From positions 1 to 64,000 of the forward strand of contig NIVC01003482.1 of assembly GCA_002269645.1 (NCBI GenBank): DNA of 64,000 bases, in the 5' to 3' direction. Numbering within the stretch: the stretch's first letter is position 1; each line of letters opens with the position of its first letter. Positions 2,825-46,370 of the stretch are shown piece after piece. The position numbers were made by a program, and so were the translations under genes. This stretch comes from Macrostomum lignano. Lineage: Eukaryota. Below the pieces are notes generated by a model, which made no database searches, was not told the DNA's origin, and was given only the letters and a program-made list of their open reading frames with translations.

Positions 2825-5020
2825 TCATTGGTGATACATCGGCGGAGGGAACCTCTGGGGCATTGGAGCTAGGGGCGGCGGCGGAGCCGTGGGAAGAGGC
2901 ATCGGCTGTGCCAGCGGCATCGGCGGCGGCATCGGCGGTGGCATCGGCGGCGGCATCGGCGGCCGCATCGGCGGCGGCATCGGTGGCCGCATCGGCGGCG
3001 GCATTGGTTGAGCGTAGCCTCCTCCAAGACCTGCCGGTTGTTGCTGTTGCCCGCCATAACGCGGCGCTTTCTGTATGACGAAAAATGTTGAAAAATGGTT
3101 TTAAGATTCATTTTTTATAGGCTCCTACCTGCCGATCAGATAAATTATATGCATTATCGAGTTAGTATACATCAAGTGCAATGAATGTCCTAATCTTCTA
3201 TAAAGTTTAACTCCCCCTTGTCGTATGGTTGGTGCACCTGAAACTTGGAGGGGAGTTAGAGAGTCGGACTCACGACTTGAAGGTCGGGGGTTCGATTTCC
3301 GATCCCACTGCAACAATTTGTATCCCTGAGCAAGACACTTAACTCTGCATTGCTTCAGTTCACCCAGCTGTAAAATGGGTACCAGCATTAGCTGGGGTAA
3401 TTGAGAGTGTGTGTGGTGACCCCCCAGTCCTTGGACTGAACAGCCGTACGCAGCCTTCAGATGCGCCGCGCAATAGCTGCGGCTGAGCTGTCGGTTGCAC
3501 ATCTGCCCATTGGGCAGGTGTAATCAATTATTTTTAATATTATTATTATTTAATACAATTCACTTCCATGGGGGTCAACTCTCAAGGCACAGAGAGGGTA
3601 GATTGCTGTGCACCCTGGGAGAGCACCTCGCAGTGCATGAGCTCGTACCCGTATATACAGTTTTGGCGAGCTTGTATGTGCTTAGGAGTCAGCAAAGTAG
3701 GCCGAGTTGCCACAGGGCAGGTTAATTGTTTTTATAGAATTTATTTTTAAGCGTTGCATAAAATCAGGTTAGGAATAAGATCGACACAATTTCGAAATGC
3801 AACCTAGAAAACAGACGCATGTATATGTCTAAGCTGTAACTACGATTATTTTATAAACAAAATGTTTCTGACCAACTTACCGGTTTCCTATTGCGGCAAC
3901 CATGGCAGATGCAGAATATCACCAGGCCAATTAGAACGACGCCAGTAACTGAGCTGACACAGATGATGGCTATCATGGATTTTGATAAGCCGGACTTTTC
4001 GTCCGAATCTTTCGGAGACGGCTTGCGTTTGTCTCCGGACGAGTATTCGTCATGTGTGCAGCATCTCTGGCTGCCGCCAGGGCCGCAGCAGTAGGACTTC
4101 GCAGACGGCCTGGCAACCAATTCAGCATAGGAGTTCGCTTTGCTGCCGTCGTCGGATTCCGGGCAGACGAACTTGTCGTAGGTCCTCGTTCCCGATGCTC
4201 GAGAAGCGAAGCACACAGTGATGTCGCCAACTACTAAGCCCCTTCGGAAATCGAAGAAGCCACTGCGGCTGACATTGCGTTGTCCAAAAAGGTACATTAA
4301 ACTATTGGGGACGTATACCGAGTCCAACTGAAAGTCAATTGCTTTGGCACGTACTCCACTGAAAAATCGATTAAATACTCATTATTATGCTGAAGTTGAA
4401 TATAGAAGTTCTTTAATTTAAATTTAAAAGTGGGGCTAGTCGTGCAATAGAATCATTACCCATTGTATCCATCGCCAAAACTTCGGAGAAGCTTAAGATT
4501 ATTGAGAGCGTCTGAAAAAAATTAGAAGTTTTCAGCGGTATAATTGTATTTTTATAGTATAGTTAAAGTTTTAGTATATTTGACTAGCAATCTAGTGCCC
4601 CCTTCGGGGCGCCCAATAAGCGAGGTGCAAATAATAATAATATTAATTGCATTCGCTTGCCGCAAAACATCGTTTTACAACCAACAGTGAGGCAATCTGC
4701 CCATTTTTGACTCCTGAGCGCAAAAAGGGTGTGAATACTGTACGCACTCGCACGCACTCGCACGCGCTCACACAAGATGTACAGTGACCAGGACCTTGGG
4801 ATTCGAGAGTGAGCCACAAAAACTAACCAGAAGTCAAGTGTCAGACGTAATAAGATGGTAGTCTCGACGCGTACGTATGTGTGATAGCGCTTCAACAACC
4901 CAATTCATGCATTAGTAAGCCATGGCACTTACGTATAGTGTTGATTGGTAGTAGGAATCCAATAGAAATTAAACAAAGTAGGTTTGATAGACTGCTTGAA
5001 ATGAAATATTGCAACGTCAT
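2825..5020 (-). CDS. STMC6/Shisa-like single-pass membrane protein, paralog A (287 aa, 4 exons)
   Basis: Exons (minus): 5020-4933 (MTLQYFISSSLSNLLCLISIGFLLPINTI, phase-1 GTAAGT), 4511-4460 (ends YNG, phase 2), 4358-3881 (C..FVCP..KSYCCG..QRCC, TM, juxtamembrane Cys, phase-0 GTAAGT), 3070-2825 (Pro/Met-rich tail ending RFPPPMYHQ*). All GT-AG; 864 nt in total, in frame. Confidence 0.85.
3245..3550 (+). mobile_element. tRNA-derived SINE with CORE-like central domain (family 1, longest copy)
   Basis: B-box-like GGTTCGATTTCC at 3289-3300; CCCTGAGCAAGACACTTAACTCTG..TTCAGTTCACCCAGCTGTAAAATGGG resembles the MIR/CORE consensus; (ATT)n tail; two more copies in the window. Lies in the last intron of paralog A. 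Confidence 0.7.
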
Positions 5021-5272
5021 TTTTTATTAAGATAAGTATGTAGTTGTCTGTTAATGTATTCAACGTTTTTACAGTTAGTGATTGATGCCTTGAAAGCCAC
5101 TATATATTCCACATGAAGTATGCGAATAAATTAAGAAAGATGAATGCCATAGATAAACCATGGTAGCCACAAAGTCAACAAAAAGAGAAATACGAAGTAC
5201 AAAAGCTTACTTAGTTCTGAAGAAAATTGATTTAGAAAAAATCTGCAACGAGTTAACGAATTCATCATAAAG

Positions 5273-8200
5273 ATGGCATACAAAATGGTATTTTCATTGA
5301 ACGCGATTGGTCTACTTCTCTTGGTAGAATACTGTACATGTAAGTAGCTTTCAGCAGAATTATTTGGTTTTAAAATTAATTCTCAATCTCACCTTACTTT
5401 AGAAGATCACTCTCACCTCTAAATGATCAATCTCGCTTTTAAATGGTCACTCTCATTTCTAGATAATCAATCTCACTTTTAGAAGATCAAAAAAAGTTTT
5501 TAAATACTAGATCTCACTTTTAGATGATCTATCTCACTTCTAAATGATCAATCTCATTTCTAGATGATCAATCTCATTTTTAGATGATCAATCTCACTTC
5601 TAGACGATCAATCTCACTTCTAAATAATCAATCTCACTTTTGGATGATCAATCTCACTTTGATATGATTAATGTCACTTCTAAATGATCAATCTCATTTT
5701 GAGATAATCAAAATCTCACTTCTAGATGAGCAAATTAGATTATCAATCTAATTTCTAGGTGATCAATCTCACATTTGAGATGATCTATCTTCTAGATAAT
5801 CAATCTCACCTCTAAATGATTAATCTCACTTCTGGATGATCAATATGACTGCTCAACCATATGATCAGTTACACTTCCGAATGCTTTAACTCTCTTTTAG
5901 ATTCTCAATAGGGATTCTAGCCTTTTAAAAATATTCTTTATACATTACTTTTAAATCCGCATAAAAATAAACATTCCAGGTGATTTAAGTGTTCATGAAA
6001 TGAGAGGAAACTTGTACAAGGGGTAACTAAAAACTCAAAGCAGTGATTTGAATTCAGTACAAGTTGATTCAAAATTTCATTTGAGCTGTTTGTTCTGCAT
6101 TTCAGAGGCGGACGCGCTTCAGAACTGGACTTCGACGTAAACTCAGTGTACGTCTCGAAAGAACTCCGACCGCTAGTATTATCAGGTGACAGACTGCGTT
6201 CGGACATAACAGCGAGCGATGTGGCCCTCTGCTTTGCCGGCCGTGGCAAGTATGATCAGTTTATCTGTCCAGAAGAAGACGTAGATTCCAATGCAAAGTC
6301 CTACTATGACTTGCTGTCAAACGCTGATACAAAGACGTATTGTTGCGGTGAGGAGGACGAGCAGTACTGCTGCACAAAAGCCGAGTTCGAGGCGCTGAAG
6401 TCAAGTTTGTCCACGGGAGCCATTGCAGCAATCGTGATCTGCTCTTTACTTGGAGTGGTGGTCATGGGTTTGATCATATTTTGCGCTTGCAAGTTTTTCT
6501 GTCTTGTCAAACAGAGGCCCAACGCCTCTAGGCCGATGGGGGTGAGTAATAAATGCAGTTCTTTCTTATCATGGCTTAAGGAGATCTGATTTAGTGAAAC
6601 AAGATAAAAAGTTCATAAAAATTAAAAATCAGATTGACGTAACAGAGCTGCATGAAAACGCCTCTGTGCAACCCCTGGGCTCTGGCGCTGAAAGGTACAC
6701 CCACCAGGCGTCTGGATGGTGCGGTAGCTGAGGTTGCGGCCAAGATCCCATTATCCATAGACAGCGGCGCGGCAGTCACCAATCACATGTGAAAACTCCC
6801 ACTAGTGAGGCGGGACTTCCGGTCTGTAACAGACGAAGATTCTTGACCCCAACTGTACTAGAAATGGCCGACTAGGGACTCTATGGACAGTCTAGTCAGA
6901 GCTGTAAACGAGGACATTTGGATCTTTTAGCTGGTGAGCGATTCTAGACTACGATTCCCTCCTAAGCCACAGGATTCCAAGGGTGGATAAAACGCCATAT
7001 TTTTATGTTGATGGGGAAGGGTAGGTCCAGAACTCTCTCGTGATGCCCTTCCATAGAAGGGGTCGGCAAACTCCGGCTTGCGGGCGATAAGCGGGCCTCG
7101 AAGCCTCTCGAAACTTCAAAAAAGCGATCCGGCCCGCTAAAGGTTTGTTTCTCTTCTCGGGTTTTTTCTTCTCTCCCCTCTCCCTTTCCCTTCTCTCCAC
7201 ACTCCCCTCTTTCCTCTCTCCCTTCTCTTCCTCTCTCCTCCTCTCTTCTCGTTTATCCTTTCTCTCATCCCATCTCATGCCTCTCTTCTCACATCTCTTA
7301 TCTTCTATTCTTTCTCTTTTTCACTCTCATCTGGCCTGCAGACATGAGCTAAAATCCTTATCTGGCACTTGAAGCGAAAAAGTTTGCCATACTCTGTCCT
7401 ATAGGGACAGGGAAGCTAAAGCTGAGAACGGGGGTGGCCGCTCGGGCCATTAAAACGGGCTCTTGTTTATAGCCCTGAGACTAAGCGTCACACGATCACG
7501 ATCACGTGATACGTGATATTGAAGGCCGTGACTTGTCCTTGATCTTCGTTACCAAGCAACCCTGGTGATGTCACCCACCAGTGGCGCTGCTATTGGACGA
7601 GAAACTGGGGTGGGGTGCAACGGAGAAAAACTATTCATGATGGAGGATTACGTAACAGACAGGAAAAGCTTGGGGAGATGTGGGGTCATAAAAACTGTCA
7701 CACGCATGAATGATTTCGAACAATAGAAAGGAGGGTGGGGTTGGTGCTCGAAGGAGTGGGTAAGCGATAAGCATGAGTCATTGTGATAACTCATTTTCAA
7801 TTAGTCATCATGGGGGGGGGCAGGAATCACACGGGAAAAGGGAGGGAGCGCAAAAAATAGCGGGGAGGGCAGGAAACCTGGACGTGTCTGTATCAAGATG
7901 GCGATCATTTTAAGGATAACCTTTTGCATTGTTGAAAGAGTGAAAATGAATTTCAGAATATTTGCTAATTGGTTCACCAAAGCGCGACGTGATTAACAAC
8001 CAAATGCCACCGATTAATAAAAAGTGTGGGAGCAATGCAACGTAGACAACAAAAACTACTTAAGTAGAACGGGAAAGTACGTTTCTTGGAAAGTTTTCTG
8101 GAGGCCGGTTTTACGGAGAAAATACTTTGCATCGATAGCAGTTTTTTTGTGACAGTCAGGTACAAATACTCAGCAATATCGAAAAGTCGCCATCACAGCA

Positions 8201-8665
8201 GATTCGGTCTGTGGTCGCCAATTTTGAGAGTGCAGGTAAAGTCTCAATCTTTGCGAGTGACGCTACTCAGCTACGCCGCGGCAGACTAGCTTGAGTTGAG
8301 GAATGATGTGGGGGAGCGGTGTGCGAGGGTTGGACGTGGATTAAAGCTACCCCGATCAGTTTTCTCGTATCTTTTATTTCAGAATAGTCCAAGAGATAGT
8401 CACTGACGCATAGATTTGGCGACTTTTTAATGTTGCTGATATGACTACAACAAGTAACAACTTATGCTGTTAAATTTATTAACCAAACATTAATTAAAAG
8501 TGCGTCACAACTTTGTGCCAATTTATCATTATGCAGCCGCCGCGGTTCGGCTCGCCCTACCAGCAGCCGGTGCCCTACGGCTCTGGCGGAGGCTTCGCGC
8601 AGCCGCAGCCGATGCCGTACGCACCGCCGCCGCCGCCGCCCATGGCACCACCGCGAATGTACTAA
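5273..8665 (+). CDS. STMC6/Shisa-like single-pass membrane protein, paralog B (224 aa, 4 exons)
   Basis: Exons 5273-5339 (MAYKMVFSLNAIGLLLLVEYCT, phase 1), 5980-6022 (ends LYKG, phase 2), 6106-6541 (C..FICP..KTYCCG..QYCC, TM, Cys; phase-0 GTGAGT), 8537-8665 (PPRFGSPY...PPPPPPMAPPRMY*). 675 nt, in frame. Confidence 0.85.
5400..5850. repeat. ~20-bp minisatellite (TAGATGATCAATCTCACTTY)n in intron 1 of paralog B
   Basis: Visible 20-nt periodicity (5541, 5561, 5581), degenerate. Confidence 0.85.
7057..7396. mobile_element. Putative hAT-like MITE
   Basis: Imperfect TIRs AAGGGGTCGGCAAACT / AGTTTGCCATACTCTG; 8-bp flanks TTCCATAG and TCCTATAG resemble a decayed TSD. Confidence 0.45.
8169..8439. mobile_element. 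MITE with ~24-bp TIRs and TA flanks (copy 1)
   Basis: CTCAGCAATATCGAAAAGTCGCCA...TGGCGACTTTTTAATGTTGCTGA flanked by TA; a homologous copy lies at 28992-29251. Confidence 0.7.
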
Positions 8666-9112
8666 TAATAAAGGACAACAGACCTGTCCTAGATACAGAG
8701 TTGCAGAGATGTGATGATAAAAACTGTGTTCTTTTAATTTGAGCGTATGCTTTTTAATTTCCTTTGACAGAGACATATCAATAAGTTTGGAATACTTGCC
8801 AAACAGGCATCTGAATAAACGAGTTTTACTACTGACTGTGAAAGCAGTTGCCTACTTTTCTGTTAAAATGGCGTCATAGCACGCTTTTTCTAACTATTTT
8901 TGTCAAGAAAAGACCTAAACACAATATTCCTTTACTTAAAGGACAACAACACAGCAAATATACCTGCTAGAAACTTTCGATAGAGACTTATGAAATTTAT
9001 AAGTCAATTTATCAAAAATACTAACCCAAGTTTTATTTTGTTTCTAAGCTGAACAAACAAACAATTTAACTTTCCTAACTGGAAAATATTTTCTCCATAT
9101 AGATTGCCTGCT

Positions 9113-9628
9113 CACGGTCTATAGTTCACAGCAGTTCACAGTCTATAGTTCACAGTCTATAGTTCATAGTTTATAGTTCACAGTCTAGAGTTCTCGGTCT
9201 ATAGTTCACGGTCTATAGTTCACAGTCTATAGTTCACGGTATATAGTTCACAGTCTATAGTTCACGGTATATAGTTCACAGTCTATAGTTCACGGTCTAT
9301 AGTTCATAGTTTATAGTTCACAGTCTAGAGTTCTCGGTCTATAGTTCACTGTCTATAGTTCACAGTCTATAGTTCACGGTATATAGTTCACAGTCTATAG
9401 TTCACGGTCTATAGTTCATAGTTTATAGTTCACAGTCTAGAGTTCTCGGTCTATAGTTCATAGTTTATAGTTCACAGTCTATAGTTCACAGTCTATAGTT
9501 TATAGTTTATAGTTCACAGTCTAGAGTTCTCGGTCTATAGTTCACGGTCTATAATTCACAGTCTATAGTTCACGGTATATAGTTCACAGTCTATAGTTCA
9601 CGGTCTATAGTTCACGGTCTATAGTTCT
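9113..9628. repeat. 14-bp minisatellite (CACAGTCTATAGTT)n
   Basis: Directly visible tandem repeat abutting the 5' end of the RTE fragment. Confidence 0.95.
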
Positions 9629-9629
9629 G

Positions 9630-11035
9630 CAGGAATGAATTGCGCGACATCTTCGCCGGCATTGTAAACGCGCCCGCATCGCCGCTGCCCGCCAGCTTTG
9701 CGCTCCCACTGGACACGCCGCTCCCAGCTGAGGAGGACTTCTGCACCAGACCAGTCACAACGGAGGACGCAATGCTGTTCGCTCGGAAAACATCAGGCGA
9801 CAAGGTGCTCGGCCCCGACGAAGTCCCGTTCGAAGCGCTGCGGCTCCGCTGTGTGGCCTCCCAGGTCACAGGCGTCATGAACCGCGTGCTCGCCGGTGCT
9901 CCTGCGCCCACCGAGTGGACCGTCGCGCACATCGTGCCGATCCCGAAGAAGGCAGGGACAACGCGGAAAGAAGACCACCGAGGGATCTCGCTGATGTCCT
10001 GCACCGCGAAGCTCTTCAACTGACTGCTGCTCCATCGGCCTGTCTGACCTGTTCGATACTTCATCAGGAGCTCCGCAGGGCGACACGCTAGCGCCGTTTC
10101 TCTTCGTGCCGCTGATGGCTGGGTGCTTCGGACCGCTCTCCTCTCGGCTGAGACGGCTTCCTGCTGCGCAGACGCATCGGTCGTCGCCACGTCGAAAAGC
10201 GCCTAAGCGTGCTTGGCTACGCCGACGACCTCGCCCTCCTGTCCTCGTCCGTTGAAGGCGCCCAGCGCCAGATCGATAGGCTGGTCGAGGCGGCATCGAG
10301 CGTCGGTCTGATCGTCAACACGCTGAAGACCGAGGTGCTGACTGTGCCGGCCGACATCCCAGCGGACTTGACGTGCCGCGGCGCAGACGGGCAGACGACC
10401 AAGCTCGCACGCTGCCAGCGGTTCACCTACCTCGGCGGTCTGGTGCCCCACGTGGAGGAAGACCTCCGGCGGCGCAGAGGACTTGCCTGGGCGGCCTTCT
10501 GTTACACTCGAGCCGTCCTCCAGTCCGAAGCGCTGCCCGACCGCCAGAGGGCTCGGCTGTGGCAGGTGCCAATCGAAACCGTCCTGCTATACAACGCCGG
10601 AGACGTGGACGCTGACGGCTACGCTAGAGCGGCAGCTGGACTCGGCGCACTTAGGGCTGCTCTGTGCGGCCTTTCAAGCTGACGAGAGCGTCGGGACCGA
10701 GGCCCTGTACGATCGGGCCAAGCTGCAGCGCCCGTCCACCATCTTGCGCCGGCTGCGACTTCAACTGGCGAGCCACGTGATCCGGGCCGAAGGCTACTGC
10801 CCCCAACCTGTTCAGAACGTCCTGCTGCTCACCTTGCAGGGCCCGTTCAGGCGGGATCAGGCCCGAACCGGTCGATATGTGGACTGCCTGCTGTGCGACG
10901 CTGGGGCGCCCGACACTGCCAACGGAGCGGACTTTGTTCGCTCCAAGGCTCTGCGGCGCGCCATCTGACGCGCCCTGCTCTAAATGTGACCTTGCATGCG
11001 GGGCCGCGAATTTTGTTGTTGTTGTTGTTGTTGTT
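9630..11035 (+). mobile_element. 5'-truncated, internally deleted RTE-clade LINE (reverse transcriptase pseudogene) with (TTG)n tail
   Basis: GPDEVP, IVPIPKK..HRGISLMSCTAKLF, GAPQGDTLAPFLF, LGYADDLALL, LIVNTLKTEVL, FTYLGG and RRLRLQLASHVIR across shifted frames; stop at 10021; ends in TTGTTG repeats at about 11013-11035. Confidence 0.9.
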
Positions 11036-12135: not shown

Positions 12136-14417
<2,282 letters not shown>

Positions 14418-14761
14418 TGAGATGCCAAAAACTAAATCAATAAGCAACATCTGTACCGACAAACTATAAATTTCTGAATTTTCATTATTATGCCCCAAAG
14501 TAAAGCTGAGCATTTATGTTGAGAAATTTAAGTTCAAATATCAAAGAATGCTTCGAAATATTTAGTCTTATTGATAACTCTTTTTTCAAAAATATTGAAA
14601 TTCGAATTTTAAATACTGAAAAACTGCTCTTTTACTCGATAAAATTTCGCGACAAAAATTAAATAAGAAATATTCACGACTACAGTCATAAAAACACTGC
14701 ACTCAAAAGATTGTACATTTTCGAGATGGAATGTTTTTTAGTCTAGTACGTGCTACTCAGA

Positions 14762-17479: not shown

Positions 17480-20447
17480 ATGAAGAATTGGCAAATTACG
17501 CATTTACTGGCAGTTATCACACTGCTCATTGTCGGACTTTTGACGGGTGAGTTTTTCACCATATTTAAACACATTTTAAATGCAAACTGTAGTTGTTCAC
17601 ACAGAATATATCAGCTACTGTCGTTCAAAGCACAAAGCCGATCAGATCACAATCTTTTTGACTCAACCTATCATTCCTGATTTTTTTATTAAGGTCTTTA
17701 AGGCGTTGAGCTTTTAAGGTGAAGAACGGAAGATTTATTGCTAATTTTATTTTGTTCAAACCAAAATCTCTGCATAGCTTCAAACGGAGCACAGAGCCCT
17801 AGGCCTACGAATAGGACTTTTAAGCTTGAGGAAACTCCTAATGTGAATTACTTTATTGGTCATGGAGAGCTGAGTAGCAAGCACAACTATAAGCGCACTG
17901 TTAAGAAAAATGGACTTTAAATAGAACTTTTGACAGATTTATCCAACCTATCTGTACCATAAAACGCTTCCTTTTACAATGTCCGCATCTCAATACTTTG
18001 TTTTCAAGTACGAGCTATTTATGATCAACATTCACTAAATTAAGTGATGTTGATGTTGATGCTAAACGAGCCACTTTACCTGATATATTTTATCAGAATT
18101 TGAGGTTTTTCAAAGCTACTACTGCTAAATTCAACTTCTCATGCATTTTAGGCGCCGAGTCGCGTGATTATAAAGGGTAAGACCAGTCAGAGGCTTTAGT
18201 AGCCACTTATACTCATACCTTTGTTGCTCTTAACAGTAGAAATACCCACGCTATTTTCCCCCATGGGAAAAGACCACGGGGTGTATTACAAATACACACG
18301 ACCCATTTCACGATAGCTCGCAAACCGAATTACCCATTTTCCTAAAAGTCCACCTTATAAATCAAAATTTCCCGCCCTTTCTGACGAACTAACTTTCAAA
18401 GTCATTGGACGTCAGCATCGTCGAGATATTCAACGATTCTTTTCGAAGACACTGGTGGCAAGGACGACCCACACTACACTGTATAAGCCTTCATAGTGAA
18501 TCCATATTGGCTCAATGATCTGGGTCCATCCATCGTAGAGGCCTTTGTTCTCAGCACTCAAGGCACCAGGGTCCTCTTTATCACCGTCTGGAGCATCGGC
18601 GGCGACCATCGAGACCTTCGACAAAAGCACCTGATCGGCATCTCAGAGACGGCTGAAAACTGAAATGGAAGAATCCTCTTCTGCATGCAGCATTCAGTCA
18701 GTAGACTTAATCGGTGAATTAAATGGACGATAGCGACCCTCTAGGTTAACCTGTAGACATGCAGGCGACCTTTCGGACCTTCAACGGATACCACCACGCG
18801 GCCCTGACGAGCTGGCTCCCCCAACATCGTGATTTTTCCGACGGTCGCCGCCGATGCTCCAGACGGTGATGAAGGGGACCCTGTTGCCTAGAGTGCTGAG
18901 AACAAAGGCCTCTACGACTGATATGCATAGTTTGTTACTCCCACGTGGTTTCATAATGAGATTTTTCGAGCAGAAAAATTTTGCCAATGTTGGTGGTTTT
19001 TGCCACCAGACTCCCCTAGGAGAATCGTTTAATATCTCGACGATGCCGATTTTTCATGATTCTCGAAGTTCCTTCATCAAATAGAGCGGAAAACTTCGCC
19101 CGTGTTCTGGATTTTCATGGAAATTGGCACTTGAATATTTTTGGGGATCCAGACAAAGAAAAAATGTGTGTATTTGAAATACACTTCATGGTCTTTCTAC
19201 TCTTAAGTAAGCGAATACTGCAGCTAACAATGCATCACCACACTTGCTTCATTCAAGATACAAAAGAGGTTCCGCAGCGCTGCTAAAAAGTCCTAAAACA
19301 AAAGTGTCAAATGATCTCAAGCGGTATATGAACAGAGATGGAGCAAATTTCAAATATGAAGAAGTCACACTGTGCAATATATACATTAACAGAGATGAGC
19401 TGCTTGCCTGCCCAGAAAAGATCGATTTTTTGGTCAACGTTTCTTTCTCTGATGTGAACATCCCCAACAGCACGAAATCATTCTGTTGCAGTTACGGGTG
19501 CTGCAACAGTACCGAATTTAAGGAAGATCTGTCCTATATTTTAAAGAGAGACATAGCACTAATTGCAATTTTTTGGTGGTTACCAAACTTTGTACTACTT
19601 CTATTTTTTTTTATTTCGTATGTGTAAGTGAGTTCGAATCAATGTTTATTTATATTTGAATCAAGCTAGACATACGCTCGTAGAATATGATAGATGCAAT
19701 GGCAGTTTTAGTAAATCGGTTTTTTAGACACAAGTTTAGATAATGTAACACTTAACAAAAGCAATTTACCTGCTAATTGTTTCTATCTTCATCCAGGGAT
19801 TCGGATACCTTTGTGTCCGCTGCGCATATCCTTATCGTAATGATCGAGAGGAAAATATTGAATCCATGCGCAACCGATACGGCTCGTGTTTGTTTTGCAT
19901 GCTTGTGGTTATTTTATTTTGTCCGATGTTCTGCGTTGGATACTGTTTATTACTGATATGTGCCAACGGCGCCCTCGATGTCAGTAATGGAATGGACAAC
20001 TGTTGGAAATGCCTCTGCTCTTGTTGTACCAACAACTCAGCACAAACTACATATGCTGATACCAACAACTCAGCACCTCCACCACCAGCACAAACTACCT
20101 CTGCTGATACCAACAACTCAGCACCTCCACCACCAGCACAAACTACATCTGCTGATACCAACAACTCAGCACCTCCACCACCAGCACAAACTACATCTGC
20201 TGACACCAACAACTCAGCACCTCCACCACCAGCACCAACTACATCTGCTGACACCAACAACTCAGCACCTCCACCACCAGCACAAACTACCTCTGCTGAT
20301 ACCAACAACTCAGCACCTCCACCACCAGCACCAACTACATCTGCTGACAACAACAACTCAGCACCTCCACCACCAGCACCAACTACCTCTGCTAATACCA
20401 ACATCTCAGCACCAGTGGTCGCAACTACGCCAGCTGCTAACAACTAA
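17480..20447 (+). CDS. STMC6/Shisa-like paralog D (second subfamily); last splice junction unresolved
   Basis: Exons 17480-17546 (MKNWQITHLLAVITLLIVGLLT, phase 1), 18152-18176 (25 nt, ends DYKG), 19258-~19620 (C..LACP..KSFCC..GCC, TM), and a probable last exon 19797-20447 (Cys-rich hydrophobic segment plus 7x 16-aa repeat). The donors near 19618/19623 are phase 2, while the long frame after the 19796 acceptor is phase 0, so a 1-nt indel or sequencing error is implied. Confidence 0.65.
18234..19202. mobile_element. 969-bp non-autonomous DNA transposon with TTAA target-site duplication
   Basis: TTAA at 18230-18233 and 19203-19206; imperfect TIRs CAGTAGAAATACC / GGTCTTTCTACTC; the paralogous intron of gene F reads GCTCTTAAGTAAGCG with a single TTAA (empty site). 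Confidence 0.85.
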
Positions 20448-22145: not shown

Positions 22146-23833
22146 ATGATGAGTTGGCGGATCAACTGTTTACCTGCAGCTGTCGTACTACTCATAGGCG
22201 GATGTTTAATGGGTAAGTTTTCCGCGACATAATTTAAATTTATCTTGTATTGCATGCTCTGCTCTTTATTAATTAGTATGTTTCCTGAGTTATAAAATAC
22301 TTCAGATTCTGTTTTATGAATTTTTCATAATCCAGAGATTTACGACCCCCGAAAACCCCCCCCCCCTATTATAGCGACGAAATTATAATCCTATATTAGT
22401 ATTAAAATCGCAGATATTACTTATTTGTCTATTTCATAAACCTACACTACGAGTAAAACAAGTCTTCAGCAGTTGTCCTGTCCACCCTTCCGGCTGCATC
22501 TCTTGTCCTGGACAGGGACTTCAGCTAGCTCTGGGATCAGATTAGAAAGCCCTGGCCCGGGGTCCTTGGGGGCCCACAGCCTCAGCATTTATTGGCCTGA
22601 ACTTCAATAGATTGCTCAGACTTTCAATGAAGATTAGGTCAGTAAGTTCATCCAGTGTTTTTTAAAAATCCTCTCAGCACTAAACTCCCGCCATTCCTTT
22701 TCTTCTGATGCAACGAAAACCAAGGATTTTAGATGCTGACCAAATTTTCAAGTAGGCCTTGTCGCCAATTCATGCTATTGCGATTCTGCTGCATTGAAAT
22801 TCCCAGCTAACTTTTACGTAGGAACTACGTACATGTAGAGTTACCAGCAGTGCAATATAAAACGCCAAGAAATTCTTCGAAAAGTATTTTCCTATGCTTA
22901 TACGTATAACTTCTGATCAATTTTAGGCGGCGTCTGTTCGAAAGATTATAAAGGGTAAGACTTGCAATGTCTTTATTAGCCACTACCTTTTTATTTTTAA
23001 ATTAGGCATTACTGTATTATTTAACTATCTTTATCTCATTCCACTTTAGAGGCAAAAGAGGTTCAGCAGAGCTGCTCAAAGGTGACAAAGTAAAGGTGTC
23101 CGAAAGTCTCAGGCAGTATATGGACAGAGATGGAACCAATTTTAAATATGACGAAGTCACAGTGTGCGAACTAAAGAATTCAGAGCTACAGGCCTGCCCT
23201 GATAAGGTTGACTATTTGGTCAACGTTCCCTTTTCTGAAGTGAGCTCTAAAGCCAGCACGAGATCCCACTGCTGCGAGTCTTCGTGCTGCACTGCTGATG
23301 TCCAATTTGCGTTGAAATTAATAAGTGACGATAGTCGGTCACGCTACACATTACTTGTTGTATCAGTAGTTTTACCCTTTGCCATTTTAATGCTCACCGT
23401 TTTATGCCGACTGTGTGGTGTAAGTCAACGCGAATCTTATGTTTGGGTTTGAATTCTCGTAGGGGTAGAGGCATATAGATTTCAGACCAAATATTTATAT
23501 AATGGCAAGAATTCTAGATCCTTAACTTGCGTCCTAAGATCAGGGCAATAGCTTTCAGAATTATTGACTATTCTGGGTTATTATAGCATCAATAGTGCCA
23601 TATACCTGTAGCTACTGTGCTTATCTGGTGTAAATACTTAACAAAGTGAATATAAATCAACTAATTTCCTTTCTTTATGCAGCTACTTATATACTGCTGT
23701 AGCGATCCGGATGCGAAAAATGAACGTATTGCCGATTGTTATGGGAATACTTCTAAATTTTGGAAAGATTCATTAACATTTATCCTAATGCATCGGGAAA
23801 ATCTGTTTTGGAAGACAAAAAGTAAAACTGGAG
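22146..23833 (+). CDS. STMC6/Shisa-like paralog E (second subfamily); terminal exon uncertain
   Basis: Exons 22146-22212 (MMSWRINCLPAAVVLLIGGCLM, phase 1), 22927-22954 (28 nt, ends DYKG), 23050-23419 (C..LQACP..RSHCC..SCC, TM, phase-0 GTAAGT), 23683-23833 (LLIYCC..., phase-1 GTAAGT). A further exon near 23890-23970 is likely; the downstream flank (24040-24190) resembles that of paralog D (20480-20630). Confidence 0.75.
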
Positions 23834-24459: not shown

Positions 24460-24693
<234 letters not shown>

Positions 24694-24769
24694 TTCGTTA
24701 ATTCTTTTAGGTTCACGGAGTCTGGCAAAAGGTGTAAGCGTAAAAAACGGGGTTGGGGATTTTTTTATT

Positions 24770-25718: not shown

Positions 25719-26592
25719 ATGAAGAATTGAGAAATTACTCATTTACTGGAATTTATCGCACTGCTCTTTGTCGAACTTTTGACGGGTGAGTTTTTCACTA
25801 TATTTAAACACATTGCGACGACAAGGACAACTAAAGCAACGTATATACAGCTGGACGCGACACTCACGTTTCATAGAGAAAGTTTTGGAGGCCACTTTTC
25901 GCCGGAAAATACACGGAGATTAGGAAGTTTTCATTAGGAAGAGATTAGGAAGAGATGATAAAACAACATTCACTAAATTAAATGACGTTGATGATGCTAA
26001 ACGAGCCACTTTACCTGATACTGTGATCAGAATACTGTGATTTGAGGTTTTTCAATGCCACTACTGCTTCATTCAACTTCTCACGCATTTTAGGCGCCGA
26101 CTCGCGTGATTATAAAGGGTAAGACCAGGCAGAGGTTCTAGTAGCCACTACCTAATTGTTGCTCTTAAGTAAGCGAATACTGCATTTAGCAATGCATCAC
26201 CACCCTTGCTTCATTCAAGATACAAAAGAGGTTCCGCAGCGCTGCTAAAAAGTCCTAGAACAAAAGTGTCGAATAATCTCAGGCGGTATATGAACAGAGA
26301 TGGATCAAATTTCAAATATGAAGAAGTCACACTGTGCAGATTTTGCACTAATGAGCTGCAGGCCTGCCCAGATAAAGTTTATTATTTGATCAACATTTCT
26401 TTCTCTGATGTAAACATCCGCAACGGCACGAAATCGTTCTGTTGCAGTTCCGAGTGCTGCAACAGTAGCGAATTTAAGAAAGATCTGTCCTATTTTTTAA
26501 AGAGAGACATACTACTAATTGCCCTTTTTGGTGGTCACCAAACTTTGTACTACTTCTATTTTTTATTTATTGTATTACGTATGTGTAAATGA
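25719..26592 (+). pseudogene. STMC6/Shisa-like paralog F, pseudogene (recent duplicate of D)
   Basis: Exons 25719-25785, 26094-26118 and 26220-~26580 are closely similar to D, but codon 4 is TGA (25728-25730) where D has TGG; 1-nt offset relative to D in the TM region; no copy of D's last exon is evident downstream. Confidence 0.8.
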
Positions 26593-27514
26593 GTTCGAAT
26601 CATATGTTGATTTATATTTGAATCAAGCTAGATATATAGAACAAGATAGATATAGAATGGCATACGTTTCAGTAAATCGTGTTTTTATGCAATATCTTGT
26701 AAATGAACAAAACGGAAGAACCATTAAGACTAAAGTACCAGCTACACGAAAAGAGTTAATAATAAATGTCACAGCTAGTGTAGTTTATCAGTTTGTAGTC
26801 GAAATTTGACAATTTAAAAATCAATTTGTCACCCAAAGTGAAACATGCACAGTTCTCAAAGCCGCAGTTTCCAAAGATGCTCGACACTTTAGCCTGATGA
26901 TTTGGCACTGCAAAAGGAGTTGGTCTATGTTGAATGTTTTCTATGAAAGAGAAATACAGGTGCTCAAGTATAGTTGCCGAACTTACCATTTGAAAGATGC
27001 ACGTCTTGGTTAAGTTGGCATGCGACTGATGAGCTTCGTCTGATGAGCTTCTTTGGTACCGCAGTATCCAAACTGGGATTCTTTGGGACTGTCGGCTGCT
27101 CGACTGAATCGATTGGCCGCTTTCAGGCATCGTTTATAGCCGTCGAGGCGTTGAAGACTGCATGGTCGCGTTTTCTTCCTAGGTAGCGCCGCACGGTTCG
27201 TTCAGTCGTCGACAGGAAAATTTTTTTCAATTAATAAGCGCGACTGTTTGACGAGATGCACTATAGCCATAGTAGTTGTTTGACAAGACAAATAGCTTTT
27301 TCTCCCACTACTCGCTTTCCTTATTTCTTGCAAGACGCAAGCAAAATCAGCACTCATCACAGTGTTGTCTATGGTCAAACTAAGCCACACAACTCAGTCG
27401 TCTATGGGTAAAACAACTCTTAAAACAGCCAATTGAAGCATGATAAAAAGTGTGGAATAATGACAGCGACAAAAGTGTCGAATAATGGCCGCAAAAGTGT
27501 GGAATAATGTTAGA

Positions 27515-27637
27515 TTGCGTAGTAGGTAAGGGGCTGAAATAATGGCCATAGACACTCGTGCGCTACGCAATCTAAAAACACGAGTGCTACTCGCACTCGT
27601 GTTTGGCCATTATTTCAGCCCCTTACCTACTACGCAA
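27515..27637. mobile_element. 123-bp MITE-like hairpin with perfect 34-bp inverted repeats
   Basis: TTGCGTAGTAGGTAAGGGGCTGAAATAATGGCCA (27515-27548) and its exact reverse complement (27604-27637). Confidence 0.7.
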
Positions 27638-28991
27638 CGTCATTGTCTATAAGACACAGCCTGGCCATTATTTCAGCGTGCCGGAAGCGGTCATTATTTC
27701 TGGGTAAGAGTCTGCGTGCGTGCGACTGCGTAAAGAGGGCGGTGGTTGGGCCATAGACTATAAATGAATAAGCTGATGATAGGCTTGAGCTGACGAGAAG
27801 TAGCTGAAATAATGGCCAGTTGAGTTTGTCATTACGCCAGGCTGTGTCTTCTGGACAATGACTGAGCGCTGAGTGAAAGTATAAATACAATGCTACGCGC
27901 ACTCGAGTTTTGGCCATTATTCAACTCAGTTGCATACTATATAATCTACCACTGTATGAATAGTGGGAAGAATTCCATGCATTGAGACTATTAAGAGGTA
28001 ATATTAAACAGTTTATTATCTAATAAATTAATACAACAGATCCCACCATAGCTGGTGTAGAGGGTTTCGTGCAAAATCGATAACAGGTGCCAGGCGGTGC
28101 TTAGCCTTCGGTTTATTTTCGCTAGTTCTTGGGTTTTTTGAGTGTAGAAAATGCTTGAAGAAAATGCTGGCTTTGATACTGTGTATTTTTGGCTTTCCTG
28201 AAATTTATAGAATCGTTTTTGCTAAAAATCGATCATATAGATACCTACCTACCTACCGACAAACCAATTTTAGCATATGAAAATCGAATTCTATAGTTAG
28301 TTTATAGTACGTCCGTACGGTATTCATATTGCGTATGATCATAAATTACAGTAATTAAATATATGTTTGCCAGTCGTTGATTTTTTACGGGAACCGTCTA
28401 TCCATTTTTTTCAAATTAGCTTTCAAAATTGTTCATTTTTTTCGATCATGCATACAGTTTTGATGAAAAATTCGAATGGGAAGTGGGCCAACTATTCGAA
28501 AAACTATTTTTTATGCTTTTAATGGCGCTCTGTTTCACGATTTAATTCTTCAGTTCGACCATCTAGTTTCGCCTTGGTCAATTTACAGTGTAAAATGTAC
28601 ATTCACAATAAAGCTAAGGAGTTTACGACCCTTTGTGGCGTTGATTGAATTTTATCGCTTACCAACCAGTCTGATAGACGATGGATGAAAGAGTGGGTGC
28701 ATGGGGAGTTTAAAAGCTGGCCTGAAATTTAACAACCCCCTAAACTGCTCTGATCTTGTTTGTTTTGTTTCATTTTATGAATACAACACAAGGTGGCGAA
28801 GTTGCAGATGAGGGCAATAGCTAATGGGCCCAAATAATTCAAATTAATTTGGCGACTTGGTATATAAAATTTATACCATTGGAAGCGGGTCAAATATCCG
28901 AAAAACAAAGTTTTTAGCGCTTTCAGAGAATTTTTAATTTGAAGGCCCACCATCAGAGTCTTAGTGTCGTAGTGTGCTGCTTATATAGCTA

Positions 28992-29251
28992 CTCAGCATC
29001 ATCGAGAAGTCGCCATCACAGAAGATTCTGTCTGTGGTCGCCACTTTTGAGAGTGCAGGAGTCTCTCAATCTTTGCGGGTGACGTAACGCCGCGGCAGAC
29101 TTGAGTTGAGGAATGAAGTGGGGGATGTGCGAGGGCTTTGTTGGACGGATTAAAGCTACCCCAGTCAGTTTTCTCGTATCTTATATTTCAGAATAATCCA
29201 AGAGAAATTGCTCACTGGTGCATCGAGTGGCGACTTTTCAATGTTTCTGAG
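28992..29251. mobile_element. MITE with ~24-bp TIRs and TA flanks (copy 2)
   Basis: Homologous to 8169-8439; TA|CTCAG...CTGAG|TA. Confidence 0.75.
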
Positions 29252-29975
29252 TAAATATAAAATTTCGAACAGTAGAAAATTGATTTGGAAGTGGGTCAAC
29301 TATTTAAAAAAGACAATTTTTTATGCTTCCAATATTTGAATTCTGAAGTTTAATGCCCCCATGGGTGCTTAAAGGAACTATTTTTGTCATAAGTGATCGA
29401 TAAATTTTATTGTCTATGGTGTATCATCATACTTCATGCTTATATACTGTGCTGAATACTTTGTCAATATTAACATTCGAAAATACGGATCGAGGCGACT
29501 TTTATTATGTAAAAATATTTTATGTTGACGAAAAAAACTTCGGACAGAATGAAAAATCTGCAGAAACTGTCTTCGTTCATATGGACGTTGATAACGTACA
29601 TGTCAAGTATTTCAATCGGTAAGTACGTTCGCCCTCTTGAATTTAGGTAGATACCAAAATTTTAGTTTTCTTAGGATTATAATTTCATCTCCAAAGGGGT
29701 TTTTGAGGGTGCTGATTTTAAATTTGAGCTTCATTTTTATGTAGCTTCAACCTAACTGTATATAGCTTAAAGCCAAGGAAGCAAAAGCAAGGAACGGCGC
29801 GAATGGAGGCTTTTAGAGGGCCTTCTTCCACTTCAAGCGTCCTATAGTGAAGGCAATTATTCCGGAGTCCGTAATTTTTTTGGAATATGCTGTTATTGTT
29901 ATAAAATGACTTCAAGCACACTATAATTATACATGTTCACTGAGACGAGTTCGCATCTCAAATTGCATGTTCTCA

Positions 29976-30185
29976 GCCAGTTCAAGAAACGGGCAACGAC
30001 CGATTGTAGCCTCGGATGAAGATGATTTCAAGCCCGACGAGCATCAGCCTGAATCCAGCGATAAAATCATGCTGATCCTGGTTGCCGTTTTCCTTGGCGG
30101 TCCAATAGTGATCGCTCTGATCACTTGCGCCTTGGCCGTTTGTCTCTGTAAACTGCACGAGAATACCGACAAAGTCAGCGGTGTA
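29976..30185 (+). CDS. Exon encoding a single transmembrane segment (gene G, incomplete model)
   Basis: AG acceptor near 29975, acidic stalk, then IMLILVAVFLGGPIVIALITCALAVCLC with juxtamembrane Cys and GT donor(s) near 30181-30184. Candidate upstream exon ~29480-29618 and tail exon ~31340-31612 could not be phased with certainty. Confidence 0.45.
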
Positions 30186-32526
30186 AGCTCGAATCTTAAT
30201 CTTAATGAAATTTCACAAGCTGGACACTTCAAACGCCATGGAACTTGAATTGATCTCAGCCAGAAAATGAAACGTACATTTTAGCGCCATTTTGACTTCT
30301 GAGAGGGAGCATGACCCAAGAGGCACTTAACCGTCCCCTGAATAGATCCCAAATTACAGCTAAGAGATGCTCAATTAATTTCGGGGCATTGTCCTCCAAA
30401 CTGGTGGTGTGCCAGAGCAGTCATGTCTTACAAACGAGCGATCTCAGGGTGAGAACAGGTACATGTACAGGCCAGGTAGGTTGATTTGGGGGGGCACCTC
30501 TGCCACACCACCAGTCTAGCTAACCATGGCTGATGTAAGGGACTCTTACCAGACTAATGCCGGAGCGGGGTCTTTTGCATCCGGGGATTCTGCAGTGTAC
30601 ATTTAACAGCTGCGCTAATTAATTAACATATGCACTTTACTCTCGCATCGTGTAGCTGAGTAATTACCAAACTCGTATGAAACGATTTCGGGTTTCTCTG
30701 CTGGGGGATGGGACTGGGGTTGGCTTTTAATGACTTTGCGAATTAACCTGCGTAGAGATCGAACAGTGACTTGGGGAGTTAACAAGATTATGATAGCTAT
30801 AGGGTTGTTCCATTCCAAATGACGGAAAATCTGGGAAGCGTGATACCGCGTGAACAACGTAGCCTTGAACTGCCTTTGACAAGCAAGCAAATGACGAATG
30901 ACGTCATCTGCCTGCGCTGTGATTGGCTAGAAATAACGAGGTTATAGGTCAAGACCGATCAGAGGGGGTTGCGCAACTATTCACATGGCAAAATGCGACT
31001 GGCTTACAGATATAGAGTTCTAAATGGAGGGGATCGTTTCATATACATGTAAGACCGAAGTTCACAACGCCGAAAACTATACTGCATGATCTTTAATAAG
31101 TAACGATAAGTGTGTTGGGGTTGGTGTAAATAGAGTGGATGTAAAATGAGTAAGTGGGTGTTAAAGAGGTGGGCTGCAGGGTGTAAAATGATCGAGTGGG
31201 GTGGGTGGAGTTATCGTTGAGTTGTCGGGCGATTAGGTCTTGGGATCCTGGAGTTGGGACCATGCATTTCTTACTGTACTTCTTAATATTGAGAGGAGAT
31301 TGTTGCGGCCTTACTGCTGATATATCAATTTTAATAGATTCTACAGACTCATTTCACTCTGCCGATCGGGCATACCAATTCCAGACACCTCAGGCCAGCA
31401 CCCAGCCGCCGCAGCGAGTCGCCCTAATTCCACCAAAGCCAATAACGGAGAGTCCGAAAGCAGTTCAGCCGGGGAGCGTTCCTGAAGATGAGCAGTCTGC
31501 TAGTCAGAAGCCAGCTGATAATGTGCCACTTAATCCAGTGGGTTTTGCTGATAATTCTCAAAAGTTTGTGAAATTTTCTGCGGAGGAGAATGCGTCAAAA
31601 TCGGATAGCTAGCTGGAGAACTGAAAAGCAGCTTGCTGTTGGTCTACATGTAAATTGCGTAATGGTCTTCTGCAATAACAAAAGGTATTTAATTTGTCAT
31701 GCCTATATAACCTACGATGTAACTAAGCGCCTACAGGGCCTGTATTTTAAATTATTACCTAAAGTTTTTTTTAACACGTTAGTCTAATTATTTATAACCA
31801 TAAAAATGAATTTAGTAAAAAAATAAAAGCAAATATTTTTGCCCTATTTTGGACTTTCGTATTGTGAAATTTCATTTGTTTTTATTATTTTATAAACATA
31901 TAGCTAGCTAGGACATTATATAGATGGGGGCTCTAGATACATAAGATTGAGAAAGAAAAGATAGCGCGCACAGTCATCAGATTTAGCTATTGTAATATAC
32001 ACAAAAACATAAAAACAAAAAATGAGCTTATGTTTAAAATACACGTGACGTAATTTACTTAATCGTTGTTTCAGCAGGGTGCAATTAGAATAATTTTAAA
32101 ATAACGCAAATTATTAACGAAAACTATAGTATATTTCAATGAACAAAAACGTATTTCACAGTTATTTGAAGTTTGAACTAAAGTATAGTACTTCGTAAGC
32201 TACGAACGCTGCTAACAGTTCTACATATTTTTGTTTGACTGTACTTACATGGATACACTAATTGCGCGAGTTTAACTTCTTGATCCCATGCATTTAGACC
32301 TATATTAGTCATATACATTCCTTTTTCGACTGAATTCACTGAATTTCGACTGAAATATCTATAAAAATGGATTTATTTAGTATATTTTACAACGTCTCAT
32401 TATTGATAACATGCTTGGTGCACATTTCATCATTTTCGGGTAAATTTTACTGTAGCCTACGGTAACTAAAAATATTATAATATTTGTATCTTTAGACTCT
32501 ATTTAGTTAAGCGTTTATTTAAAAGC

Positions 32527-33732
32527 ATGTTAAATTCCGGTTTATTGACTATATGGCTAACTCAAGTAATTCTCGTTTACTTTCGTTTACTTCGAAGTAA
32601 TTATCGTGATATTGTGCCTACACTAACTTAAAGAGTATATTATTGTTCAAGTAAAGGATATATATAAAATCCTGTCAAGCTAAAAAAGAACACAAAATAA
32701 TTAAATACCACTAGATAGATATAATTGCCTTACTGTAGGTATAAATAATTGCTGTACAATTATTAAATGTTAACCAGTTGATAGTTAAACAAACTCTTCT
32801 AAATTTATCTCTCCATTCAGTGGCTGCTCAGAAGGAGAAGCTTGAAGTTGAGGAGCCTCGACTTGAAGGCGAAGACCGGCATATTGGACACGGAAGGCAC
32901 CAATCTGGCGGCCATCATCGCGCTCGGGTGAGGTACTCCAGCAGCTATCGTGTGCCGCCACAACTGCTCCAAAGGAAGGGGTGAGTGCGAAAATTTAAGG
33001 GGCTGCTATAATTAACGTGTAGGTTAAAAGGATGCTATTAGAAGCAGGGCGCATCCTTGCAATGCAGACAATGGAGACGATGTCCTTACTGAGCATCCCA
33101 ATCCTGAACTAAGCATCCCCTTCCTTACGTTTTCTCCTAAAAAATTTTTGACAATCAATCTTCCAATCACCAGCGGAATCGATTTAGCTAACAAGACGCA
33201 CCTGATCGAGACCGACAGCGTGCTAATAATCTACCAGTTAAGACGCCTGATTTACAATCGGAGCACAGAAAATCTTGCCGTTTGCGCTGGCCCAGCAACT
33301 GGTCCCAGTTTGTCTTCGAATCGGACTCAATCGTTCAACTATTTTGCCTGCCCAACAGAAATTGGAGGTACCAAATTAACCAACTCTGTTAACGACGAAC
33401 GATCAGACGTGGCTTCATATTGCTGCGGCTCCGCACCGTCGCAGACTTGCTGCGACAAAGAGACATTCTATCGGACCTATGGTCATCCAGTACCTCCTTC
33501 GATGGTTGTCATTGGCGTCTCTGCCGCTGCTGGGATGATTGTATTAGCATTGCTCACTGCAGTTTTGTTCTGCATCAAACGACCAATTCGAAGGGACTCA
33601 ACGGTTAGCAAAGTTAATAAAAAAGCAGCAAAGTCGGATTTCGCTGGGACACCGCTGATTCTTACTGCGGGCCCGTTGACGGACAGCCTCGGCTCGGTCT
33701 ATGCGACAAGTCAGCAGTGCCCGGCAGACTAG
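32527..33732 (+). CDS. STMC6/Shisa-like single-pass membrane protein, paralog H (262 aa, 3 exons)
   Basis: Exons 32527-32596 (MLNSGLLTIWLTQVILVYFRLLR, phase 1; weaker donor GTAATT), 32821-32980 (ends QRKG, phase-2 GTGAGT), 33174-33732 (C..YFACP..ASYCCG..QTCC, TM, tail). 789 nt, in frame. Confidence 0.75.

Positions 33733-36225: not shown

Positions 36226-37550
<1,325 letters not shown>

Positions 37551-46024: not shown

Positions 46025-46370
<346 letters not shown>

Follow-up and report, generated by a model that had tools for sequence, protein, structure and literature searches.

A 64,000-nucleotide stretch of the Macrostomum lignano genome (assembly GCA_002269645.1, contig NIVC01003482.1, positions 1 to 64,000; hereafter the window) contains a row of related genes between positions 2825 and 33732. 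We read it, with a probability of roughly 0.78, as a tandem cluster of Shisa-like genes of the STMC6 superfamily that formed when a single four-exon gene was repeatedly duplicated in place and whose products act through an adaptor mechanism. The ancestral gene would have comprised a signal-peptide exon, a mini-exon, an exon encoding a cysteine domain plus transmembrane (TM) segment, and a tail exon. The evidence that carries this reading begins with the third of these, here called the core exon. Exactly seven stop-free core exons with six-cysteine motifs emerged from the open reading frame (ORF) list combined with a motif scan, and the limits of the cluster, 2825 and 33732, fall exactly on the stop codons of the outermost genes, A and H:

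Core exon A: 3881-4358, minus strand
Core exon B: 6106-6541, plus strand
Core exon C: 12867-13329, plus strand
Core exon D: 19258-19621, plus strand
Core exon E: 23050-23419, plus strand
Core exon F: 26220-26592, plus strand
Core exon H: 33174-33732, plus strand

Just seven columns are invariant in a seven-way alignment of these exons, namely C1, C2-P, CC and CC. The order C*C*CC*CC holds in all seven window genes and in nine flatworm homologs, and the same cysteine columns stay invariant when P0019, a CYYR1-type hemichordate protein, is added to the alignment. The gap between C2 and C3 is 24 residues in six genes (23 in H), while that between C4 and C5 is 7 residues in A, B, C, and H and 3 residues in D, E, and F. 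Paralog identity is 20-43% overall. In tblastn searches, the B protein matched the exons of A (E = 1e-27), C (E = 1e-16), and H (E = 1e-5), and hhalign aligned the A/B/C/H group with the D/E/F group at a probability of 97.3% (E = 2e-11); the two subfamilies are mutually homologous. When the 1912 ORFs from all six frames of the window were scored with a hidden Markov model (HMM) of the family, these seven were recovered (E <= 1e-39) and no others. The initial annotation, made from the sequence alone, had proposed a tandem set of at least seven diverged paralogs in two cysteine-motif subgroups; with exactly seven core exons, similarity far above chance, and each motif present where it had been placed, both proposals are upheld.

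Several public copies of the region are available for comparison. Window positions 1-15260 are 99.76% identical to contig NIVC01003254.1 of the same assembly, positions 22,066-33,017 are ~98% identical to NIVC01003840.1, and NIVC01001769.1 is a further copy with 96-99% identity over genes A-C. The published M. lignano assembly is known to owe its redundancy to the duplicated karyotype of the DV1 line, and the GenBank BOX15_Mlig models come from an RNA-seq-guided transcriptome assembly instead of ab initio prediction (PMC5730564). Public models exist for A, B, C, E, G (a neighboring gene described below), and H, and automatic UniProt/UniRef names among the relatives include 'Shisa N-terminal domain-containing', 'CX domain-containing' (P0004, P0005, and P0008), 'CYYR1' (one B isoform), and 'shisa-6-like' (P0012), so that the cluster is less easy to miss than had been supposed. 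The literature search found no paper on these genes or on a flatworm Shisa-like cluster, and the gene identifiers were found neither in searchable papers nor in the searched supplements of the M. lignano germline/neoblast paper.

Gene models, built with public proteins as guides together with splice-junction reading, reveal one layout in all seven genes. Exon 1 is hydrophobic and signal-like (58-88 nt, phase 1 at its 3′ end), exon 2 is a mini-exon (25-160 nt, phase 2 at its 3′ end), and the core exon, whose opening base completes a Gly codon, encodes the N-terminal segment, the six cysteines, and the TM helix. The lengths of exon 1 and exon 2 equal 1 modulo 3 in 7/7 genes, as does that of the core exon in A-E, where its 3′ end is in phase 0; a tail exon was found in A-D. 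All 20 modeled introns are bounded by GT-AG. Every member has a (K/Y)-G-G motif at the exon 2/3 junction, interrupted by the phase-2 intron (for example, window 6020-6110 and 22950-23060). Intron positions and phases are identical throughout, as expected if the genes descend from one ancestor by tandem duplication. The (K/Y)-G-G motif also occurs in trematode and cestode homologs, and in D, E, and F it is followed by a K-R-G dibasic site that hints at proteolytic processing just past the signal peptide.

Four of the genes, A, B, C, and H, are intact, with full open frames and canonical splice sites:

Gene A: 2825..5020, minus strand, 287 amino acids; exons 4933-5020, 4460-4511, 3881-4358 (core), and 2825-3070
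Gene B: 5273..8665, plus strand, 224 amino acids; exons 5273-5339, 5980-6022, 6106-6541 (core), and 8537-8665
Gene C: 12136..14420, plus strand, 278 amino acids; exons 12136-12193, 12735-12771, 12867-13329 (core), and 14139-14420
Gene H: 32367..33732, plus strand, 263 amino acids; exons 32367-32439, 32821-32980, and 33174-33732 (core plus tail)

These genes differ in their tails. The 84-residue tail of A (43% Pro, with PPPM repeats) ends in FPPPMYHQ and contains one PPxY (PPMY) at residue 282, while that of C runs from a polyQ tract into PPPPPPPY, with one PPxY at residue 259. The B tail (51 residues, 35% Pro) has xPY motifs only and no strict PPxY, and the H tail (46 amino acids, 7% Pro) has no PY motif. 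Public proteins agree with each model: A reproduces P0004, B reproduces the RNA-seq-based GenBank protein P0001, C matches P0008/P0030, and a transcript-based product at the syntenic place of H in NIVC01003840.1 has the same length as the H model, 263 amino acids. An alternative Arg/Cys-rich tail of A in public protein P0003 is caused by a 1-nt indel at the last acceptor (window ~3073) in the other copy; in the window the Pro-rich frame is in phase.

The D/E/F subfamily is less uniform in its state of preservation, and a further gene, 'G', lies between F and H:

Gene D: 17480..20447, plus strand, 368 amino acids if the donor 19621/GT is used; exons 17480-17546, 18152-18176, 19258-19621 (core), and 19797-20447
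Tandem repeat in the last exon of D: 20038..20413, plus strand, 7.8 copies of a 48-bp unit encoding (TTSADTNNSAPPPPAQ)n (Tandem Repeats Finder)
Gene E: 22146..23452, plus strand; exons 22146-22212, 22927-22954, and 23050-23419 (core), with a read-through stop at 23450-23452
Pseudogene F: 25719..26592, plus strand, a truncated D-type duplicate; exons 25719-25785, 26094-26118, and 26220-26592
Gene 'G': 29549..31612, plus strand, a transcript-supported single-TM gene of ~176 amino acids with an ambiguous exon model

The core exon of D joins the last exon in frame solely through a weak GTGTAA donor, and a strong GTAAGT donor lying 2 nt farther downstream does not keep the phase and would yield 205 amino acids. 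P0005, a paralog of D, uses that GTAAGT donor; in D a T-rich stretch, with a T9 run just upstream of the junction, is shorter by 1 nt. Since the last exon of D retains an open frame of 218 codons, an old lesion is less probable than either a homopolymer error or splicing at the weak donor. The hydrophobic segments of D lie at residues 128-162 and 179-215; in both D and the transcript-based P0005, the first is followed by a short charged loop and then by a second 25-30-residue hydrophobic, Cys-rich segment. Beyond it D has a CxxCxCxCC cluster and eight copies of TTSADTNNSAPPPPAQ, each unit with an N-N-S sequon, as well as PPPP repeats without PPxY. If the second segment spans the membrane, we infer that the D tail would be extracellular and mucin-like.

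Along its whole length, the transcript-based fragment P0007 agrees with the junctions of E; the 3′ end of the gene was looked for in the window and not found. E is intact in the window and in NIVC01001769.1, where it is inverted, and in NIVC01003840.1 an 8-nt deletion (~11040) and a frameshift truncate the protein, which explains the 79-amino-acid public model P0007. F is a truncated pseudogene. Codon 4 of its exon 1 is TGA, its TM segment carries a 1-nt insertion, the homologous splice donor is mutated to ATGAGT, and a terminal exon is lacking, the DNA similarity to D stopping at 26687, before the last exon of D. The stop and frameshift are also found in the independent contig NIVC01003840.1, where no gene was called, and lesions common to two assembly copies are not errors of the window. 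'G', considered as an eighth family member, was rejected as such, since it has no Cys-rich ectodomain and the HMM match of its ORF at 29910-30245 is confined to the TM segment (E = 0.17). A 176-amino-acid gene is called at its syntenic place in NIVC01003840.1. The first exon of 'G' opens with MKN…, as those of D and F do, and shares the phase-1 end of the family's signal exons; 'G' could be a family derivative that lost its ectodomain.

By hydropathy, an N-terminal hydrophobic signal-like exon is present in 7/7 genes and a TM segment follows the cysteines in each. A, B, C, E, and H have one TM segment, and D and P0005 have two hydrophobic segments after the ectodomain. These profiles agree with the architecture that had been proposed for all members (signal peptide, six cysteines, and TM segment), except that the D-type does not appear to be a single-TM protein. 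In A, B, C, E, and H the TM segment has cysteines at its cytoplasmic end, and D has them after its first TM segment, as had been predicted for most members. PY-motif tails, by contrast, do not hold as a general feature: a strict PPxY is restricted to A and C, one each, giving 0-1 per protein. A moderately confident AlphaFold2 model of B based on a nine-sequence alignment (mean predicted local distance difference test score, pLDDT, 77.6) places C1 and C2 in a beta-hairpin, a short helix in the long loop, and two short strands at the CC pairs, followed by one long TM helix. The N-terminal extension (pLDDT 78-87) is built as part of the domain.

As given in three citing papers, the STMC6 definition of Pei and Grishin describes single-TM proteins with six conserved cysteines, a Pro-rich tail, and frequent PPxY motifs (PMC6125347; PMC5578492; PMC11399591). 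The window genes were compared with the Pfam families in question at cut-offs of 22 bits for Shisa_N, 30.7 for DUF4690/SNORC, 31 for CYYR1, and 28.1 for WBP-1. Shisa_N is the best match of A, C, and H and the second match of B, and A, B, C, and H score 15.8-20.8 bits with it (B 20.8, C 19.3, H 17-18). These matches cover the cysteine region and not the TM segment, and Shisa_N is also the top or second match of P0008 and P0009. The best match of B is DUF4690/SNORC (26.8 bits, E = 8e-6, from CC…CC through the TM segment), and B also reaches 16.7 bits with CYYR1, all below the cut-offs. The UniRef 'CX' names presumably come from another signature database, as no CX (PF01705) match appeared in any Pfam scan at E <= 1-10 despite those names.

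An exhaustive search with the family profile against 1.84 billion representatives returned just 21 proteins at E <= 1e-3: M. lignano paralogs, three parasitic-flatworm proteins (Mesocestoides corti, Schistosoma japonicum, and Calicophoron daubneyi), one hemichordate, two assemblies, and repeat-derived junk. No close ortholog outside M. lignano was found in this search. The S. japonicum protein P0017 (E = 6.7e-6 with the family profile) passes Pfam Shisa_N at 26 bits, and the Ptychodera flava 'shisa-4-like' protein P0019 (E = 6.2e-5) passes Pfam CYYR1 at 44.8 bits and carries CP…SYCCG-x4-QYCC-x3-EY residue for residue as in the window family. A homolog search with P0019 returned only P0019 itself, and no named Shisa ortholog was retrieved in our searches. 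Together with the sub-threshold Shisa_N, SNORC, and CYYR1 scores, the reach of the profile to P0017 and P0019 indirectly supports the proposed STMC6/Shisa-like relationship.

Within the superfamily, the proposal of an unusually long C2-C3 loop also proved sound, with 23-24 residues in the Macrostomum cluster genes against 15-17 in the parasites and 10 in P0019 and in a neighboring canonical member. The N-terminal segment, in contrast, is not the novelty that it had been taken for: it (consensus SVYIPxxLRxL; 'SVY(I/V)P..L') is conserved in trematode and cestode homologs. Assignment to Shisa proper is not made, with a top window score of 20.8 bits (B) against 22 and no orthology shown to a vertebrate subfamily, and neither is assignment to the CYYR1 family (PF10873), which B alone matches, at 16.7 against 31 bits, the window genes having 0-1 PPxY motifs and not three. 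To judge from sequence, it is essentially right to accept the family in the STMC6 superfamily, and not in any one curated family, as a flatworm-wide branch marked by the N-terminal extension plus CP…[SK]YCCG-x4-Q-x-CC-x3-[EQ][FY].

The cluster continues past the left edge of the window. Two more members lie on NIVC01001769.1, 19-25 kb past gene A (7188-7868 and 10001-12667): P0009, an A-like protein of 378 amino acids in which a long Ser/Thr linker is combined with a polyproline tail, and a 254-amino-acid member with the canonical short loop (C-x10-CC-x7-CC) and a PPPPPPY tail. On that contig a 613-amino-acid gene separates these members from A, and a Fibrinogen_C gene lies farther out. Further relatives, P0013 and P0025, are on other contigs. 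The D-type gene of NIVC01001769.1 (P0005) is 79-82% identical in DNA to D or F, in flanks that are 96-99% identical, and NIVC01003840.1 has unrelated sequence upstream of E. Conserved phases, a dead F, an E that is broken or inverted in other copies, varying D-type content, and the lack of a close outside ortholog fit the lineage-specific birth-and-death process that had been suggested. The frame-changing indels between copies (at the A acceptor and in E) may be alleles, subgenome differences, or assembly errors.

The ratio of non-synonymous to synonymous substitution rates (dN/dS) was calculated by the Nei-Gojobori method; the between-copy counts are tiny, and A, B, and C are saturated at synonymous sites, so the values are weak evidence either way. 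Between copies, dN/dS is 0.6 for A (3 changes), 0 for B, 0.28 for C, and 0.11 for E, and the core exons of these four genes differ by 0-3 amino acids. Among D-type sequences, the ratio is 0.61 for D versus D′, 0.49 for D versus E, and 0.85-0.94 for D versus F and F versus D′, F being a pseudogene; between two copies, F has six differing positions, apparently all non-synonymous. No comparison gave a dN/dS above 1 as a sign of positive selection. Evolution of the D-type genes is fast, with no demonstrable diversifying selection.

We hypothesize that the cluster encodes type I membrane proteins whose small ectodomain, probably held by three disulfides, would face the lumen or the cell surface. 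By analogy with characterized relatives, the PPxY tails of A and C would recruit NEDD4-family HECT ligases through WW domains, and the adaptor, along with a membrane partner of its ectodomain or TM segment, would then be ubiquitinated, retained, or sent to endosomes or lysosomes. Such a mechanism has been shown for CYYR1, whose PPxY motifs engage WWP1, and for WBP1L with CXCR4 (PMC11399591); in addition, WBP1 and VOPP1 bind WWOX (PMC6125347), and Shisa holds back Frizzled and fibroblast growth factor (FGF) receptors (PMC5578492). The Pro-rich tail of B, with no strict PPxY, probably uses other proline-recognition modules, and H, with its short non-Pro tail, would bind partners without PPxY output. 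B, H, E, and D, all without PY output, may modulate partners differently. The D-type most likely exposes a glycosylated, mucin-like C-terminus (a Ser/Thr/Pro repeat with an N-x-S sequon per unit) in addition to its Cys domain, and D may be mainly a surface glycoprotein.

Several observations weigh against an STMC6 cluster of adaptor genes. On its own, none of the window genes reaches a Pfam gathering threshold, and Pfam matches D, E, and F to no STMC6 family at all, so that membership in the superfamily rests on transitive profile evidence and motifs. A sequence-profile search of the PDB returned integrin TM noise alone, leaving no solved structure for comparison, and a Foldseek search of the PDB with the B model gave no match with E < 4. 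PPxY is present in just 2/6 intact genes, the exon 3/4 junction of D is in frame only via the weak donor, and E has no identified 3′ end in our models. How far the expansion can be called 'lineage-specific' is tied to how well the databases cover other macrostomids. Fragmentation of the public assembly could have created some of the structural differences between copies as artifacts; the pseudogene F, the 8-nt deletion in E, and the diverged D-type gene are sequence-level facts. The failure to reach any threshold or solved structure would also be expected of a flatworm-specific family, unrelated to Shisa/STMC6, that converged on the six-cysteine pattern and matches Pfam through composition (CC pairs plus a TM segment). 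Many co-matches are indeed TM-only (Protocadherin, EphA2_TM, and Glycophorin), and the N-terminal extension and long loop are absent from canonical members. We nevertheless consider convergence very unlikely, because the profile reaches Pfam-validated Shisa_N and CYYR1 proteins at E values of 1e-5 to 1e-6 among 1.84 billion sequences, the Shisa_N matches span the cysteine region and not the TM segment, the P0019 motif is identical, and a short-loop member with a PPPY tail belongs to the same extended cluster.

The initial annotation had favored a diversifying cell-surface recognition system, of immune, allorecognition, or reproductive type, in which variable ectodomains would form recognition surfaces and copy-number variation a repertoire. 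The strong divergence between conserved cysteines (20-43% identity), tandem duplication with a pseudogene, and the mutability of the D/E/F half (an inversion, a null E, and D-type genes that differ between copies) are consistent with this, as are a sequon-rich D repeat tail that may face outwards and a raised dN/dS among D-type paralogs, about 0.6. The selection analysis speaks against it: dN/dS never exceeds 1, and A, B, C, and E are nearly unchanged between copies, with ratios of 0-0.6 on very few changes. The family is also small (about ten lineages, and 21 matches in the exhaustive search), and it holds strictly to its loop length (24) and flanking motifs. We therefore regard a recognition system as unsupported and unlikely. 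A similarly doubtful idea concerns D, E, and F only, as undescribed two-pass Shisa-like glycoproteins, polymorphic between haplotypes or subgenomes, in a fast-turnover system for surface identity or gamete interaction in this outcrossing hermaphrodite; such two-pass proteins may present at the cell surface, alongside the six-cysteine domain, a mucin-like repeat that is rich in sequons and variable in length. Mere decay, with one or two functional genes and the rest becoming pseudogenes, would account for the dead F, the frameshifts in one copy each of E and the A tail, the need of D for a weak donor or a corrected homopolymer, and the setting of the cluster among satellites and transposon fragments. 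It is highly improbable given that A, B, C, and H have full frames, canonical splice sites, and transcript-based public models, that B, C, and E have between-copy dN/dS values well under 1, and that the 218-codon terminal exon of D is open.

Read as an STMC6 cluster, the locus documents a flatworm branch of the superfamily, with an N-terminal extension common to schistosomes, other trematodes, and cestodes. STMC6 proteins control receptor surface levels via NEDD4-type ligases, and most are without a known partner. The local tandem expansion lies in M. lignano, a genetically tractable model for which transgenesis and RNA interference exist, and the paralog tails form a natural series (PPxY, Pro-rich without PY, non-Pro, and two-pass glyco-repeat) for questions about ectodomain binding and the role of the tail. 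The parasite homologs are of some interest for neodermatan surface biology. A specialist would find the cluster itself unsurprising, since its genes are already annotated and expansions of the superfamily are known in other invertebrates; the mildly unusual part is the D-type sub-architecture.

The window is also rich in repeats. In positions 38398-45697 a 1,621-bp unit occurs four times in tandem, and each of these units contains 3.7 copies of a 255-bp subrepeat that has a long open frame (432 amino acids, Thr/Leu-rich), and the array shows strong negative GC skew. On either side lie (CTAT)n and (TATC)n tracts (36226-37549 and 46025-46375) and duplicated ORFs (37544-37945 and 46388-46804). 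Transposon debris between the genes comprises a reverse-transcriptase fragment at 9612-11172 (RVT_1, 23.9 bits), a Mos1/mariner helix-turn-helix fragment at 35412-36147 (33 bits), and a short repeat with three copies (3125-3502, 15901-16188, and 34870-35121) that encodes '…CNRQLSRSYCAAHLKAA(Y/N)GCSV…'. Micro- and minisatellites are dense (13371-14064, 14762-15667, 16153-16633, 24461-24693, 50731-51624, 54994-55946, and others); examples are (AGTT)174 in the last intron of C, 17-bp x 52, 23-bp x 21, (AGAC)58, and 24-bp x 37 and x 40, and several produce long spurious ORFs. On the plus strand, 59278-60597 is a 439-amino-acid ORF of a rhodopsin-family G-protein-coupled receptor (Pfam 7tm_1, 90 bits) with a long Ser/Ala/Gly-rich third loop and NPxxY, probably an exon of an aminergic or peptide receptor. 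Nothing in the window matched Rfam when it was scanned.

Among known systems, CYYR1 resembles the window genes in a small Cys domain, a putative signal peptide, and, outside the D-type, a putative single TM segment with cysteines at or in the membrane. The motif C-P…[ST]YCCG-x4-Q[YW]CC-x3-E[FY] is likewise seen in the CYYR1-type P0019, and the Pro-rich PPxY tails of A and C resemble the CYYR1 tail. Unlike CYYR1, the window genes have a C2-C3 loop of 23-24 residues instead of about 10, ~45 extra conserved residues N-terminal of C1, and one PPxY or none where human CYYR1 has three (PMC11399591). Shisa-like proteins and Shisa 1-9 (PF13908) have the same C*C*CC*CC ectodomain and, as several window genes appear to, a single TM segment and a Pro-rich tail. 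Pfam ranks Shisa_N first or second for A, B, C, H, and most flatworm relatives. However, the window scores stay below gathering, and the flatworm-specific N-terminal extension and long loop set these genes apart; the Wnt/FGF-receptor or AMPA-receptor roles of Shisa cannot be transferred to them.

The group of WBP1, WBP1L (OPAL1), VOPP1, and TMEM92 resembles the window family in overall architecture and in the proposed PPxY-WW output, and P0013, an M. lignano relative outside the cluster, scores 23.1 bits with WBP-1, below 28.1. Unlike this group, the window genes have no WBP-1 match and fewer PY motifs, with none in the models of H, D, and E. SNORC (DUF4690, PF15756) gives the top single Pfam score of any window gene (B, 26.8 bits), although that score is below 30.7 and B is the sole match. 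SNORC is a vertebrate proteoglycan-type protein, for which we know of no PY-adaptor role. A further parallel is offered by the lineage-specific Shisa-like expansions in amphioxus and Saccoglossus that Pei and Grishin reportedly described in 2012. Those are likewise said to be lineage-restricted, tandem multiplications of six-cysteine, single-TM invertebrate genes. In comparison, the flatworm set is much smaller (about ten lineages) and includes a glyco-repeat subfamily with two hydrophobic segments.

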